Source: Botryllus schlosseri (Eukaryota). Taken from it: a DNA stretch of 64,000 bases. The DNA is taken from assembly GCA_051294905.1 (NCBI GenBank), contig CM119373.1:15624001-15688000 (forward strand), given 5' to 3'. This document shows positions 51,425 to 58,909 of the stretch, piece by piece; position 1 is the first letter of the stretch, and every line of letters begins with the position of its first letter. The translations under genes and the position numbers were made by a program. A model generated the notes under the pieces. That model saw nothing but the letters and a program-made list of their open reading frames with translations, searched no databases and had not been told where the DNA came from.

Positions 51425-52422
51425 CTGCGAAAAGTTAAATGTTCATCGTGTGATACTTTAGCAGTAGCAGGTGTGGGAGTGATTTTGTATGTGTGAACAG
51501 CCTTTAGAACAGTCACCCCCCAGTTAGAGACAACTACTTTTGTGTTCAAGAACGGTAGATGTCCTTAAACCGAACGGAGGTGTCAAATTAAAGATACTGC
51601 CAAGTGATAATTTTATCTTCAATTTCAGCCAACATCATATTCTACAGAGCACTTTCCCATAAATGATATATTTGATTAATTTCAGGGTTAATGATATGGA
51701 TTTGGTTTGAGGGGCAGTGATATAAAACCAGAAACCACTGGGCTACAGTTTGAATATAGTTGATTATAATAAGTAATAGGCCTACACATATAATTAGAGT
51801 TTGGTTTTGATTGGGGTTAGGATACGGTGAACGTGCCCTCATTACAATCCATTACTGCAACACACTAAGTCATCGCATTATTGGTTTTTCGTCTATCAGT
51901 CCTGATACTTGGAAAATAGGGCCAGGAACTGTCAGGACTATGGAAAATTACGATATTATGAATGTAAGCCATTCTATGTCACTCGAACAGTGTTGAAAAA
52001 AGTGGGTTGAAATTGATTGAACTGAAAATTAAACACTGAATACAATGACTTGGACTTACAACAGCACGACTCGCACTCGAGTCAAACCTATAAAAGTGAG
52101 ATCGACTTGTGACTCAGAACCTGACTTGGGGTGACGACCCTGGCCATCAGTCATTTTTCGCTTTCCGCGAAATTGCAAACTTGGAAGTCCATATTCCCGA
52201 TTAACTGCCAAAAGTGCTCAACACCTCCACAACAACTACTTTCTGAAACTACTCAGTCAAGTAGTTTTTTCAGACCCAACATTTTCTATCTCTCTTGTTT
52301 GAAACTGCTGCTACTTCTACTTGCAAGGTTCCGTATCTGAGCAGAAATTGACAGTGTGACTTCTCCTTCTACTAAAGTAGCAACACTGAATACTTAACAG
52401 TACAGCAACAAACAAAACTCAC

Positions 52423-55400
52423 CCACGATACACTCGTTGAACAAGACAAGCTGCATTTTCCTTGGATCTCTCTCGCAGAATCAGCCTCCATCTCCGTTGG
52501 ACAGCAATGGTAGCAGCGCGTAGAGTTCTAAATTTCCGCACCGCGATAAATCTTCGCACGTGAGACTGAATGACGACGATGGATCGGAGATGAAGGAAAT
52601 CGTATCGTTTGGCCGTTTCTCTCAATTCTACGAGTCGCTTGCCAGCCGCCCGCATTCTCCAAAACGACTGAATCACCACAACACTCTTCAGTATCTTTTT
52701 ATATTGCAGGCGCTGCCGTCTCATTTCGAGCACTGCTCTCCATTGCCGCTGAATTTTAATTGTAGATTTTAGAATCTTGAGGTACCGCTGGTGTTGAAGT
52801 CTCATTTCAAGTACTGCTCTCCATCTCTGCTGAATCATGACAGCGCTTTGTTGCACCTTTCGGAATTTATTTTGTTGCTGCCTCATTTCGATCATTGCTC
52901 TCCATCTTTGCTGAATCACGAGTGCACTGCTCTGCATTGTTTGATATTCCTTTCTTTGCAATCTCATTTTGAGCATTGCTCTCCAACTACGCTGGATAAC
53001 AAGGCAGTACCGGCGGGTCCTCGTGTATTCTTCACTTTGAGATCTCATTTCAAGCGTTGCTTTCCATTTTCGCTGTATCACAACAGTACTTCTTACAATC
53101 AGTTGATACCTTCTTCTTTGCGATCTCATTTGAAGGGTTGCCCTCCATTTTCGCTGGATGAAAATCGTGCTACCTTTGAGCTTGTGGTACTCATTTTGCA
53201 TTGATCTCATTTCAAGAGTCGCTCTCCATCTTTGCTGAATCACAGAGGCACTGCTTTGCAGCTCAAGGTATTTCTCCTGCTGGGATCGCATTGTCAATGT
53301 CGCTCTCCACCTCCGTTGCACCGCAAGTGCTGACAGCTGGAGCTGTCGATATTCCTCTCGATCAGATCTCATTTTGAGCATTGCTCTCCACCATCGCTGT
53401 ATCACAACCACTGTGACCCTGATTTCTTGATACGCTTGCTTTTGTCTTCTCATTTTGAGCGTTGCTCGCCATTTTCGCTGTATCAAAAGCACACTTTGGC
53501 GCATATCGAGATAGTCTCTACGTTCACAGTCGCTTTGAAGCCTTGATCTCCATTTTTGTTGAATCACAACAGAGCATTCTTGAAGTTTACGGAATTTGCT
53601 TCGTTCCATTCTCATTTCGAGTGTCGCTCTCCATTTCCGTTGAATCACAAGAGCACTTCTCAGCTGTTCTTGATATTTATTCTGTTGCGATCTCATTTTG
53701 AGCGTCGCCCTCCATTTGCGCTGAAGCACAAGTGCACTTCTTTGCAGTTTCTGATATCCGTTTTGCTCCATTCTCATTTCAAGAGTTGCTCTCCACTTCC
53801 GCTGAATCACGAGAGCACTCCTTTGCAGTTCTTGATATTCATTCCGTTGCAATCTCATTCTAAGTGTCGCCCTCCATTTTCGTTGAATCACAACGGCACA
53901 GTCTCGAAGTTTACGGAATTCGCTTTGCTCCATTCTCATTTCGAACGTCGCTCTCCATTTCCGCTGAATCACAAGAGCACTTCTTTGCAGATCCTGATAT
54001 TCATGGTGTTGCGATCTCATTTCAAGTGTTGCTCTCCATTTTCGCTGAATCACAACAGAGCATTCTTGAAGTTTCTGGAACTTGTTCTGTTCCATTCTCA
54101 TTTCAAGCGTCGCCTTCCATTTTCGTTGAATCACAAGAGCACTTCGCAGCTGATTTTGATATTCATTCCGTTGCGTCCTCATTTCAAGCGTCGCCTTCCA
54201 TTTTCGTTGAATCACAAGAGCACTTCGCAGCTGATTTTGATATTCATTCCGTTGCGTCCTCATTTCAAGCGTCGCCTTCCATTTTCGTTGAATCACAAGA
54301 GCACTTCGCAGCTGATTTTGATATTCATTCCGTTGCGTCCTCATTTCAAGCGTCGCCTTCCATTTTCGTTGAATCACAAGAGCACTTCGCAGCTGATTTT
54401 GATATTCATTCCGTTGCGTCCTCATTTCAAGCGTCGCCTTCCATTTTCGTTGAATCACAAGAGCACTTCGCAGCTGATTTTGATATTCATTCCGTTGCGT
54501 CCTCATTTCAAGCGTCGCCTTCCATTTTCGTTGAATCACAAGAGCACTTCGCAGCTGATTTTGATATTCATTCCGTTGCGTCCTCATTTCAAGCGTCGCC
54601 TTCCATTTTCGTTGAATCACAAGAGCACTTCGCAGCTGATTTTGATATTCATTCCGTTGCGTCCTCATTTCAAGCGTCGCCTTCCATTTTCGTTGAATCA
54701 CAAGAGCACTTCGCAGCTGATTTTGATATTCATTCCGTTGCGTCCTCATTTCAAGCGTCGCCTTCCATTTTCGTTGAATCACAAGAGCACTTCGCAGCTG
54801 ATTTTGATATTCATTCCGTTGCGTCCTCATTTCAAGCGTCGCCTTCCATTTTCGTTGAATCACAAGAGCACTTCGCAGCTGATTTTGATATTCATTCCGT
54901 TGCGTCCTCATTTCAAGCGTCGCCTTCCATTTTCGTTGAATCACAAGAGCACTTCGCAGCTGATTTTGATATTCATTCCGTTGCGTCCTCATTTCAAGCG
55001 TCGCCTTCCATTTTCGTTGAATCACAAGAGCACTTCGCAGCTGATTTTGATATTCATTCCGTTGCGTCCTCATTTCAAGCGTCGCCTTCCATTTTCGTTG
55101 AATCACAAGAGCACTTCGCAGCTGATTTTGATATTCATTCCGTTGCGTCCTCATTTCAAGCGTCGCCTTCCATTTTCGTTGAATCACAAGAGCACTTCGC
55201 AGCTGATTTTGATATTCATTCCGTTGCGTCCTCATTTCAAGCGTCGCCTTCCATTTTCGTTGAATCACAAGAGCACTTCGCAGCTGATTTTGATATTCAT
55301 TCCGTTGCGTCCTCATTTCAAGCGTCGCCTTCCATTTTCGTTGAATCACAAGAGCACTTCGCAGCTGATTTTGATATTCATTCCGTTGCGTCCTCATTTC

Positions 55401-58056
55401 AAGCGTCGCCTTCCATTTTCGTTGAATCACAAGAGCACTTCGCAGCTGATTTTGATATTCATTCCGTTGCGTCCTCATTTCAAGCGTCGCCTTCCATTTT
55501 CGTTGAATCACAAGAGCACTTCGCAGCTGATTTTGATATTCATTCCGTTGCGTCCTCATTTCAAGCGTCGCCTTCCATTTTCGTTGAATCACAAGAGCAC
55601 TTCGCAGCTGATTTTGATATTCATTCCATTGCGTCCTCATTTCAAGCGTCGCCTTCCATTTTCGTTGAATCACAAGAGCACTTCGCAGCTGATTTTGATA
55701 TTCATTCCATTGCGTCCTCATTTCAAGCGTCGCCTTCCATTTTCGTTGAATCACAAGAGCACTTCGCAGCTGATTTTGATATTCATTCCGTTGCGTCCTC
55801 ATTTCAAGCGTCGCCTTCCATTTTCGTTGAATCACAACGGCACAGTCTCGAAGTTTACGGAATTCGCTTTGCTCCATTCTCATTTCGAGCGTTGCTCTCC
55901 ATTTCCGCTGAATCACCAAGGAGCTTTCTTGAAGTTTCCGCAACTTGCTTTGTTCCATTCTCATTTCAAGCGTTGCTCTCCATTTTCGCTGAATCGTTAG
56001 AGCATTTCTTCGAACTGTTTGGTAATAATTCTGTTGCAATCTCATTTCACACATTGCCCTCCTTGTTCGCTGAATTACAATAGCACTATTTCGCAGCTTC
56101 TGATATTCATTCTGTTCGATTCTCATTTTGAGCGTTGCCCGCCATTTTTGCTGAATCACAACAGCGCTTCTTTGGAGCTTCTGATATTCGTTCTGCTGCA
56201 ATCGCATCTCGAACGTGGCTCTCCATTTTCGTTGAATCACAATAGCACTTCTACAAAGCTTTTGATATTCACTCTGCTGCAGTCTCATTTCGAAGGTCGC
56301 TCTCCATCTTTGCTGAATCACAATCGAGCTTCTTTGCAGCTGCAAATATTTGTTCCGTTGCGACCTCATTTCGAGCGTCGCCCTCCATTTTGTCTGTATC
56401 AAAACAGCACTTCTTCGAATTGCTTGGTATTCGTTCTGTTGCAATCTCATTTGAAACGTTGCCCGCCATCTCTGCTGAACCACGACGGCACTTCTTTGCA
56501 ACTCCTGATATGCGTTTCGTTGCAGTTTCATTTCAATCATTGCCCGCAGTCGTCGCTGGATTACAAGGACTGATTTACGCAGTTTTTGATAATGCTTCCG
56601 TTGAACCCTCATTTCAAGAATTGCTCTCCATTTCCGCTGAACCAAAAGAGCACTTCTTTGCAGTTTCTGATATTCATTCTGTTGCAATCTCATTTCAAGC
56701 GTTGCTCTCAACCTGCGTTGTATCACAAGTGCAGCTCTTCGCATATTCTGATATCGTTGACGTTGCAGTCTCATTTCCCGGATTGCTCGCCATCGTCTCT
56801 GCGAGACAAGCGAAGCTTCCCTCAAACTCTGATATTTCGTTCTTTGTAATCTCATTTCTAGGATCGCTCTCCATCTCCGTTGCGTGACAATCGAAGCATT
56901 TCTCAGTGTCTGATATTTCATTCTTTGCAATCTCATTTTCAGCGTTGCTCTCCACTTCCGCTGAATCACAAGCGAAGCGTTTTTCAAAACGATGTACTTG
57001 TTTAATTGAGATCTCATTTCGAGCGTTGCTCTCCACCTGAGCTGAATCACAACAGCGCTCTTGCGCATCTCCTTGTATTCTTTTTGTTGTAATCTCATTT
57101 CGAGCGTCGCTCTCCACCTGCGCTGAATCACAAGGGCAGCTTTTTTCAGATCTAGATATTCTTTGCGTTGCGATCTCATTTCAAGAGTAGCCCTCCACTT
57201 TTGCTGAATAACAACAGCTCTTCTGCGCATCTCCAGGTATTCTTTTCGGCGCAATCTCATTTCAAGCATCGCTCTCCACTTTCGCTGAATCTTGATAGCG
57301 CGTCCACGGGACTCGAGGTATTCTCTTCGTAGCAATCTCATTTCGAGAGTCGCTTTCCATCTCTCCTGGATTAAAGCAACACTTCGGAGCATTTCCCGGT
57401 ATTGTTTTTGCTGCAATCTCATTTCCAGCGTTGCTCTCCACCTATGCTGAATCACAAGTGAAGCTTTTTTCAGATCAAGATACTCGTTCAGTTGTGATCT
57501 CATTTCAAGCTTTGCTCTCCACCTTTGCTGAATCACAAGTGAAGCTTTCTTGAGATCAAGATACTCATTTCGTTGCGATCTCATTTCGAGCGTCGCTCGC
57601 CACCTTTGCTGAATCACAACAGCTCGTCCACGCATCTCCAGGTATTCTTTTTGGCGCGATCTCATTTCAAGTGTCGCTCTCCACTTTTGCTGTATCACCA
57701 CAGCACCAGCCAACACTGCTCTATACTTTACACGCTGTTTCCTCATTTCAAGAGTTGCTTTCCAGCGTTGTTGTATCGAGATGGCCGAGGCAATCTCCAG
57801 TCTTCTTCGAGAGATAGTTTTTCGAGCTATAAAGCCACGGATATACGATTGCAATCTTACAATGCAACATTTTGTATCGAGGTATTTTTGCCGCTGTGAT
57901 TTCATCGCGGTGTAGCTTCTCCATTGTGCTTGTATGATTCTGGCGGAACTGTGTTCCAAACGCCTTCTCTCTCTTAACTTTCTTGTGACTTGTCGAGACC
58001 GCCATAGTCTCTGGATCAGCATGGCCGCAGATACCTCCTTCAAGTGACGATACTTT
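52423..58056 (-). CDS. ASPM: ASPM giant IQ-repeat exon (5,634 nt, about 70 IQ motifs)
   Basis: Uninterrupted frame of IQxxWR repeats; TTCTAG acceptor and GTGAGT donor, phase 2 to 2; flanked by CH-domain and C-terminal ASPM exons. Confidence 0.95.
54098..55837. repeat. Coding minisatellite: 21 near-identical 81-bp units plus a partial unit
   Basis: Unit encodes KWKATLEMRTQRNEYQNQLRSALVIQR; only two units differ (R to W, near 55628 and 55709). Confidence 0.97.
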
Positions 58057-58588
58057 CTAGAAGTGAAATGACATGGTTTGAAAACTTTGTAAAAATTGAA
58101 TACAAAAGTGAAATATACACTGAAATAATATATGTTATTCACAATGCAAATATACGAAAACGCAACCTTCAGGGGCGGTCGTCAGCAAATGAGTATTTAC
58201 AAAAACTTGAGTGAAACTACGTTACATACATCCCAATATGATACAGTACAAATATAATAAAACACAAAATACAGGCAAATTAGTGGCCTGCTTCGGCTGA
58301 AAGTCTTGGTGTAGCACAGAATGCTGAACGACACCCTGTTGGTGACAAGTGGCTTTATGATTTCAGCATTAGACCACTGGACTAGAATCTAAAATTTATA
58401 CCGGTACTAAATCATTGCGCTTAGCTATACTAGAAATGCAATAATCCTAGTATGCACGCACACGCTTGATGATGTTAATACATCTGAGTCATTCATTACA
58501 CACTAGGATGGTCCTTAAAAACGAATTTTGGAAAGGGATGTTTTGGCAGGGTCAGACCAAAAACTTGAAAACTTTTCAAATTTTGTAC

Positions 58589-58909
58589 CTGAATGCTCTC
58601 TGTATGATGATAGCAGATTCCCGTTTCGTCGTGAAAACTGCGACTTCTTTCCTGGCCAGTAGCGTGGCTTTCCACCGACGCTGCAGGACAGTGACGGCGC
58701 TTCTTTGCATCATGTAGGCATCTCGAGCCATCTTTCCGATTCGGTAATTGCGATACGATCGTTGGATTTTCAAAACTGCCTCCCTCTTCTTGACAAAGGC
58801 TTTACGAATCAGTAAGCATCTCCAATGGTTTTGAATTACCAGGGCCGCACACGTTCTGGCTTTGCGTTCTGCCAGCAGGTGCGTGCTTCGTTTTCTTTCC
58901 AAGTAGCCG
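58589..58909 (-). CDS. ASPM: ASPM exon, 4 IQ motifs
   Basis: TTTTAG acceptor, GTACAA donor, phase 2 to 2; IQNHWR, IQRSYR, LQRRWK, IQRAFR. Confidence 0.92.

Follow-up and report, generated by a model that had tools for sequence, protein, structure and literature searches.

The gene and its large IQ exon

The window, i.e. the whole stretch of 64,000 nucleotides analysed here, carries on its minus strand a tunicate gene which the domains encoded by its exons identify as orthologous to ASPM/asp: the ASH domain, the CH exons, the IQ array and the C-terminal exons follow each other collinearly. The ASH domain (PF15780, 39 bits, above cut-off) lies on the same strand about 36 kb upstream, at G000:C3:15717851-15718015 (minus strand), and residues 31-139 of fish ASPM match by tblastn at this site. 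Two calponin-homology (CH) exons, at 63832-63647 and 62691-62533 on the minus strand, were found by tblastn with the CH residues of fish and lizard ASPM, with E values down to 1e-11; the Pfam profiles CH and CAMSAP_CH gave weak scores, below cut-off, on a single CH exon piece, as expected for a fragment. Further downstream, an exon with four IQ motifs (58589..58902, minus strand; 58902 is the end of the open reading frame) has 58589 as its last base, followed by a donor GT at 58588-58587. Next comes the large IQ exon (52423..58056, minus strand), which is bordered by an acceptor AG at 58058-58057 and a donor GT at 52422-52421, and whose 5,634 nt, or 1,878 codons, encode about 68 IQ-type units of 27 amino acids in one unbroken register. 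This exon is transcribed: RNA contigs from two other studies (X5 and X6, see below) join it to the upstream exon, splicing base 58589 to base 58056. For the C-terminal Armadillo/HEAT-like region of ASPM, tblastn gave one short exon match (51121-50924, minus strand; the E values with lizard and fish ASPM were 8e-5 and 5e-4).

The IQ profile PF00612 matches the large exon with an E value of 8e-12, and the upstream exons match it as well. When the C-terminal 548 residues of the exon were used in a protein search, the named proteins among the best 120 matches were nearly all Asp/ASPM, and most of those listed carry ASH, CH and IQ domains or a subset of them. The identification of the gene as ASPM, put forward in an earlier note based on the sequence alone, is thus well founded. 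No recognisable tunicate orthologue was present among the named proteins of these 120 matches, which cover a length window of 1,032-3,285 amino acids that may exclude such a protein.

An array of near-identical units within the exon

Inside the large exon, positions 54097 to 55837 (minus strand) consist of a perfect head-to-tail array of 1,741 bp, i.e. 21.49 copies of an 81-bp unit as determined by period-81 self-identity; the same period of 81 was called here by Tandem Repeats Finder. Each unit keeps the reading frame, its 81 nt corresponding to 27 codons and to one IQ unit, QRNEYQNQLRSALVIQRKWKATLEMRT. Cutting the register from 54098, which is where the earlier note had the array begin, one base to the right of the actual start, yields 21 units with 0-1 mismatch each relative to the first one, and the mean pairwise difference between array units is about 0.2%. 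The additional 0.49 unit lies at the coding-5' edge (55798..55837, minus strand): it is a stretch of 40 nt within the flanking unit 28 which encodes the IQ core, VIQRKWKATLEMR, and is identical to the array units. There is only one variant in the array, a G>A change on the + strand at 55629 and again at 55710. On the coding strand CAACGG becomes CAATGG; this C>T transition within a CpG replaces Arg by Trp, giving QWNEY in place of QRNEY. It affects two adjacent units (55551..55712, minus strand), coding units 30 and 31, which are the second and third from the coding-5' edge. The array is therefore a minisatellite in the usual sense of head-to-tail, near-identical units of about 10-100 bp (21.49 x 81 bp, 0-1 mismatch), and a candidate coding VNTR in that the unit length is divisible by three and no stop interrupts the frame of the expressed exon. 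Long spurious open frames are present on the opposite strand of the array and constitute a hazard for annotators, and collapse of such an array is to be expected in short-read or k-mer assemblies.

The rest of the exon has a different appearance. Its 42 non-array units are 7-53/81 nt apart in pairwise comparison, with a mean of 30, and the longest exact period-81 run outside the array is 23 nt. The nearest outside relative of the array unit is unit 55 (53607..53687, minus strand), which differs from it by 12/81 nt, affecting 5 codons synonymously and 5 non-synonymously. Divergence within the exon is lowest in the immediate flanks of the array: unit 28 (55794..55874, minus strand; EQSEFRKLRDCAVVIQRKWKATLEMRT) and unit 52 (53850..53930, minus strand) differ by 7/81 nt only, and units 27 and 50 by 13/81. 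These low values point to older duplications around the array site, with units 28 and 52 as partners in one of them. The earlier description of 21 near-identical 81-bp units in an ASPM exon, with an Arg to Trp change in two adjacent units near the coding-5' edge as sole variant, agrees with what we found by three means (Tandem Repeats Finder, register cut and self-identity); its statement that the surrounding IQ units are well diverged is correct on average but does not apply to the immediate flanks.

Three array units score 25.3 bits against PF00612 (cut-off 20.3), in three separate stretches, one per unit. A query of six units gave no match among PDB sequences. Six units are predicted to fold as a single helix, with a pLDDT of 94. 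By analogy with the family, we infer that each array unit is one putative calmodulin or light-chain binding IQ motif on a continuous alpha-helix. Twenty extra units would then lengthen the protein by 540 residues and provide 20 predicted light-chain sites; according to this model, the rod that separates the CH domains from the C-terminal region would gain about 80 nm.

Read depth and the allelic state of the array

Six array copies together with the 5' flank were compared with read-derived contigs. One of the data sets, X1, consists of DNA contigs, which cover the intron; contigs identical to the reference are found there beside a second haplotype, and X1 is probably the animal from which the assembly was made. 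Two others, X5 (from a 2018 study) and X6 (from a 2020 study), consist of spliced RNA contigs with SNPs of their own. In X1 the array forms a contig of about 111 nt, that is, a cycle of 81 words (of 31 letters), with a word depth of 223.6. The flank has a depth of 18.4-20.1 where both alleles are present and of 7.9-12.7 on single-haplotype contigs, so that the excess of array words over the diploid flank (around 19) is 11-12-fold. A 21-unit allele is expected to contribute a mean of 20.36 copies of each cycle word and a one-unit allele 1.12. The observed depth corresponds to 223.6/9.6 = 23.3 haploid equivalents, which suggests that one haplotype has 21 units and the other about 1-5; with two 21-unit alleles a depth of about 390 would be expected, and X1 shows roughly half of this. 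In the RNA sets the array words have a depth of 23.4 against a flank median of about 17.5 (X5) and of 26 against about 18.7 (X6), i.e. about 1.3-1.4 times the flank, and both samples thus look unexpanded, with about 1-2 units. It should be kept in mind that all these depths are means over Logan contigs rather than copy numbers, that a contig filter may hide some contigs, that RNA depth is uneven (6.5-49 between flank bins), and that the array-side contig of X6 possibly represents a junction rather than the cycle.

The number of 21 units is the assembly's own count, since no read or contig spanning the array was seen among the runs compared. Raw reads of a bulk RNA-seq run, X23, were few, with only 4 on 2.9 kb. 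A search of the genome itself revealed neither the array unit at another place nor an alternative haplotig with a second allele, and there is no N anywhere in the window. Protein searches brought no sequence of a second assembly or of a related species with which the array could be compared; a query joining the 3' flank to two array units, so as to bridge an unexpanded array, retrieved one unrelated insect protein and none from B. schlosseri. Between the two X1 haplotypes, 36 differences were counted over about 2.4 kb of flanking exon (about 1.5%). Six of the differences between haplotypes, clustered at 56544-56562, were considered as a possible tract of gene conversion between units, but neither version matches another unit and the idea was rejected.

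The explanation that we favour, and hold to be probable, is that a single IQ unit of ASPM/asp has genuinely undergone a very recent in-frame minisatellite expansion, which is apparently polymorphic. The sequenced animal seems to be heterozygous for the long allele, which the animals behind the two RNA sets seem to lack or to carry only rarely; this would make it a length variant that segregates rather than one that is fixed. The exact genotype of 21 plus a few units is what we infer, as are the exchange mechanism, the seed and any effect on the spindle discussed below. That the expansion is recent, as the earlier note had proposed, is supported by the difference of about 0.2% between units compared with about 1.5% between the flank haplotypes. 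The length polymorphism which it predicted receives indirect support from the half-height depth in X1 and the low array depth in RNA, but in the form of two states only, about 21 units and a few. The main alternative that it named was an error of the assembly in copy number, with one or a few true units on both haplotypes and an array inflated by the assembler. Perfect tandem arrays are indeed classic sites of such errors, and the lack of a spanning read is in keeping with one. However, the comparison with the flanking exon that the same note had proposed as a check (223.6 against about 19 in X1) finds the expansion in the reads themselves, and the resulting 11-fold excess requires about 22-23 units per diploid genome; besides, the window belongs to a 38 Mb contig without N here, typical of long-read assemblies with reads longer than 1.7 kb. 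We consider an artefact of this kind very improbable. A wrong or shared count is unlikely too, if somewhat less so: the expansion would be real, but either about 11 units per haplotype would have been doubled, or X1 would be another animal with two alleles summing to about 22 units. The depth ratio indeed gives only the sum of the two haplotypes, about 23, and X1 is probably, not certainly, the source of the assembly. Yet this sum is only slightly above the 21.5 units of the assembly, and the remainder is similar to the near-single-copy level of two other samples; a long-read assembler would hardly be expected to double an array of 0.9 kb, and X1 does contain contigs identical to the reference beside the second haplotype.

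Two further possibilities concern the distribution of the long allele rather than its length. The 21-unit array could be fixed in the species and the low depth of array words in RNA could result from contig building or filtering, considering that Logan depths are contig means, that some records are filtered out and that RNA coverage is uneven. But the same pipeline did produce a high-depth cycle contig for X1, where moreover the depth is about half of that expected from two 21-unit alleles, and two independent RNA studies concur in giving about 1.3-1.4 times the flank; we regard fixation as having little probability. Alternatively, the expansion could be somatic or clonal, having occurred in a cell lineage of the animal or colony without being a germline allele. 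It was seen in one DNA sample only, and tandem arrays can change mitotically. Nevertheless, the depth fits a whole haplotype (about half of the alleles), the assembler resolved one clean haplotype, and the duplicated Arg>Trp change implies steps separated by a point mutation, which are easier to accommodate in germline time. We consider a somatic origin very improbable as well.

Origin of the array, known parallels and significance

If the array is a young segregating expansion, as we think, its growth could have proceeded as follows. An allele without the expansion probably contains about 1.5 units: two neighbouring IQ units would share identical 40-nt cores (VIQRKWKATLEMR), 81 nt apart. This exact direct repeat of 40 nt is the likely seed of a first unequal exchange, and no other site of the exon would serve as well, the longest exact period-81 run outside the array being much shorter. 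Mispairing on the 40-nt identity would duplicate one 81-bp unit, either through unequal exchange between sister chromatids or homologues or through slippage during replication. With perfect 81-bp copies in place, more unequal exchanges may have brought the array up to 21 units. During this growth, a C>T change of the methyl-CpG type (Arg>Trp) would have arisen in one unit, to be copied to the neighbouring one by a one-unit duplication or a short conversion. The presence of this change in two adjacent units suggests that the array grew in at least two steps, and the near-identity of its units, which are 0-1/81 nt apart compared with a mean of 30/81 for the others, argues for its youth.

In many respects the gene resembles ASPM and Drosophila Asp. 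The domain order agrees (ASH, CH, a long IQ array in a huge exon and, as far as the one short exon match shows, an Armadillo-like C-terminus); tandem duplication of IQ units has clearly enlarged the array, and a helical structure and the binding of calmodulin or light chains are predicted for these units. There are differences as well: the unit in B. schlosseri is a uniform 27 amino acids, whereas mammalian ASPM IQ units are of mixed lengths, and the known differences in IQ number are old, exist between species and involve diverged units, whereas the B. schlosseri array comprises 21 units identical in DNA and apparently segregates within a species. The number of IQ motifs ranges from 2 in C. 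elegans and 24 in the fly to about 60 in mouse and 74-81 in human (PMC374243, PMC10047693), and is equal in all primates (PMC374243). Calmodulin is a ligand of the Asp/ASPM IQ motifs, and pole focusing in flies depends on this interaction (PMC10047693). No report of intraspecific polymorphism in ASPM IQ number, or of a tunicate ASPM, was found in the literature searched, which does not prove that none exists.

Coding VNTRs, such as the zinc-finger arrays of PRDM9 and the kringle IV-2 repeats of LPA, provide another parallel. As in the tandem-repeat exons of mucins (PMC13345508), the units are head-to-tail, tens of bases long, a multiple of three and near-identical, and copy number shifts by unequal exchange or slippage generate alleles of different protein length. 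Those systems, however, are long-standing and hypervariable, with many alleles, whereas only two states (few, about 21) are evidenced here; and their hosts are secreted, structural or DNA-binding proteins, whereas the host is here a conserved protein of the mitotic spindle. As to the protein, the lever arm of the myosin V type also has tandem IQs on a single helix decorated by calmodulin, about 6 of them, of 23-25 residues each and fixed in number. The likeness lies in consecutive IQs on one uninterrupted helix (a predicted one in our case), with the number of units setting the length of the rod; unlike myosin, the present protein has no motor domain, and its light-chain binding is predicted.

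Differences in ASPM IQ number have been discussed for twenty years, initially as a trait correlating with brain size (PMC374243). The present host combines a minute brain with an IQ array of mammalian size. Up to now, the steps by which IQ arrays grow could be inferred from old and diverged repeats only, whereas here a growth step is still fresh, with its putative seed, its perfect copies and a first mutation that is already duplicated. One may speculate that ASPM IQ arrays grow in sudden bursts and that the present allele is such a burst caught while still segregating, although at this point we find the idea rather doubtful. If it is true, a viable and expressed ASPM variant exists which is 540 residues longer than its allelic partner (20 IQs, a rod of about 80 nm), nature would provide an allelic series in which to ask whether IQ-array length influences spindle-pole organisation or spindle size, and the long allele might be under selection or drive. 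Confirmation of the allelic length difference would in any case mean that long and short ASPM rods occur in one genetic background, which would offer a direct way to probe the role of IQ number at spindle poles.

The array and its host gene

An 81-bp period extends across 53.6-57.7 kb (Tandem Repeats Finder), and period-81 self-identity delimits within it a perfect array, coded on the minus strand, at 54097-55837 (1,741 nt, i.e. 21.49 units). When the + strand is cut in register from 54098, 21 consecutive units show 0-1 mismatch to the first; the longest exact period-81 run elsewhere does not exceed 23 nt, and the window contains no N. The extra 0.49 unit consists of 40 nt of IQ-core coding sequence within unit 28, a unit flanking the array (numbered from the coding-5′ side of the exon). 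Variation among the units is confined to a G>A change (+ strand) at 55629 and 55710, on the coding strand a CpG transition (CAACGG>CAATGG) changing Arg to Trp in the second and third units from the array's coding-5′ edge. The earlier note's description of 21 near-identical units with one Arg>Trp variant is thus borne out. The stop-free repeat also creates, on the + strand of 53556-56083, two long spurious open frames (814 and 739 aa), a trap for gene callers.

Several results agree that the gene is an ASPM/asp orthologue. The ASH domain (PF15780) has a match on the exon's strand, about 36 kb farther upstream. Searched by tblastn with fish and lizard ASPM, the minus strand shows collinear exons that correspond to ASH, the conserved middle, CH (63832-62533), the start of the IQ series and a single exon of the C-terminus (51121-50924). 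IQ motifs are recognised by Pfam in the large exon as well as in two exons upstream of it, and a database search with the last 548 residues of the exon matched almost exclusively Asp/ASPM proteins.

The array lies in an open frame at 52419-58142 (minus), in which the large IQ exon occupies 52423-58056 (acceptor AG 58058-58057, donor GT 52422-52421). Contigs of two sequencing runs, X5 and X6, depart from the stretch at 58058 and resume with letters found from 58591 on; once two ambiguous bases are resolved, this is a GT-AG intron at 58588-58057 which joins an upstream IQ exon to 58056. Contigs that cross a spliced intron identify both runs as RNA and show expression and splicing of the exon. 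It holds about 68 IQ-type units of exactly 27 aa, back to back with zero indels. Over 52635-57818 (minus), 63 consecutive units keep the exact 27-aa (81-nt) register, yet their mean DNA difference is 37%, which suggests strong constraint on unit length. The 2018 (X5) and 2020 (X6) RNA assemblies cover the exon well, but from a bulk RNA-seq run of 2026 (X23), of which about 6% was read, just 4 reads fell on the 2.9 kb of 55308-58250, so expression of the gene in that sample is weak.

Copy number in sequencing reads

The main alternative raised earlier was an error of copy number in the assembly. Contigs were compared with a partial array of six copies plus the 5′ flank. X1 is a DNA run, since the intron is covered; it yields reference-identical contigs and a second haplotype with 36 differences in about 2.4 kb, and is probably the source animal of the assembly. 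The depth of its 31-letter words is 18.4-20.1 in flanking contigs with both alleles and 7.9-12.7 in single-haplotype contigs. Its array appears as one contig of about 111 nt, equal to a closed cycle of 81 such words, at a depth of 223.6, these depths being means over contigs and not copy numbers, and taken behind a filter that may hide records. Two 21-unit alleles would be expected at about 390 and an artefact with few true units at about 20-60, a range that opposes the assembly-error reading; the reads thus contain the expansion, and apparently only one haplotype carries it. Averaged over the cycle words, the computed copy count is 20.36 with the assembled allele and 1.12 if the allele has a single unit, and the 23.3 haploid equivalents found (223.6/9.6) correspond to the assembled allele together with some 1-5 units on the second haplotype.

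X5 and X6 carry their own SNPs and therefore represent genotypes other than the reference. Their array-word depths (23.4 and 26) are only 1.3-1.4 times their flank medians (about 17.5 and 18.7), where a 21-unit allele would give about 20-fold; this fits unexpanded alleles of 1-2 units, with the reservation that RNA coverage is uneven and that the X6 array contig may be a junction piece and not a cycle. We consider it very probable that the expansion is real and, on indirect evidence, likely that it is heterozygous or polymorphic. The length polymorphism predicted earlier gains this indirect support from the word depths, which fit two unequal haplotypes in X1 and unexpanded alleles in X5 and X6; the figure of 21 is the assembly's own count.

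The 36 X1 differences (55838-58250, about 1.5%) lie mostly in coding sequence and denote very high heterozygosity, as is reported for tunicates generally. One X1 contig of haplotype depth (11) skips 67 nt at 58096-58164, within the intron that immediately precedes the IQ exon, probably because of a heterozygous indel. At 56542-56562, six or seven differences are packed into about 20 nt, and at most of these sites the second X1 haplotype and both RNA samples agree against the reference, so that it is the assembled (expanded) haplotype that stands apart there. Inter-unit conversion is not an obvious source of this cluster: either version is without a match in any other unit.

Age and growth of the array

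The non-array units of the exon differ pairwise by 7-53 of 81 nt (mean 30); the one closest to an array unit, unit 55 (53607-53687), differs from it at 12. Older duplications are visible in the immediate flanks (unit 28 versus 52, 7/81; unit 27 versus 50, 13/81); repeated turnover has therefore affected the exon's middle, and the 21 copies are its most recent product, far younger than any other. Towards the coding-5′ end, an older higher-order repeat occupies 57075-57764 (period 324, i.e. four units; 74-79% matches), and units 6/11, 7/8 and 8/12 in this area are 10-12/81 nt apart.

Mean pairwise difference among the array units is about 0.2% (two variant units in 21, one site in 81), which supports the recent expansion proposed earlier. 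Alleles diverge by about 1.5% in the flank, so that the array is far younger than their coalescence in the population; this is what an unfixed variant would show. In a single-unit allele, two perfect 40-nt direct copies would stand 81 nt apart; no better substrate for misalignment exists in the whole exon, and this repeat may have been the seed of the expansion. Since two adjacent units share the Arg>Trp mutation, it must have arisen in an already existing array and then have been copied to the neighbouring unit by a one-unit duplication or a short conversion, which implies growth in at least two steps. Unequal exchange between sister chromatids or homologues and replication slippage are the standard mechanisms for such arrays; the data fit exchange and slippage alike and do not tell them apart.

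Consequences for the protein

Three array units score 25.3 bits against the IQ profile (cut-off 20.3), with one stretch per unit, and six units are predicted to form a single uninterrupted helix (pLDDT 94; single sequence, indicative only). With 0.15 nm per residue, the 540 residues of twenty extra units amount to about 80 nm of helix, and the long allele is predicted to offer 20 more light-chain sites. Asp/ASPM proteins bind calmodulin through their IQ motifs, and flies need the Asp-calmodulin complex to focus spindle poles and to attach centrosomes (PMC10047693). Provided that the inferred genotype is right, a heterozygote can at least live with the long allele.

ASPM has a species-dependent number of IQ motifs: 2 in C. 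elegans, 24 in fly, about 60 in mouse and 74-81 in human (PMC374243, PMC10047693). One number is common to all primates examined, whose arrays have been called the largest known (PMC374243, PMC10047693). In the literature searched, ASPM was nowhere reported to differ in IQ number within a species or to have identical IQ units. In its mechanism the array is a coding minisatellite of the ordinary type, as are mucin repeat exons (PMC13345508); what makes it of interest is its host, ASPM, and an expansion caught fresh.
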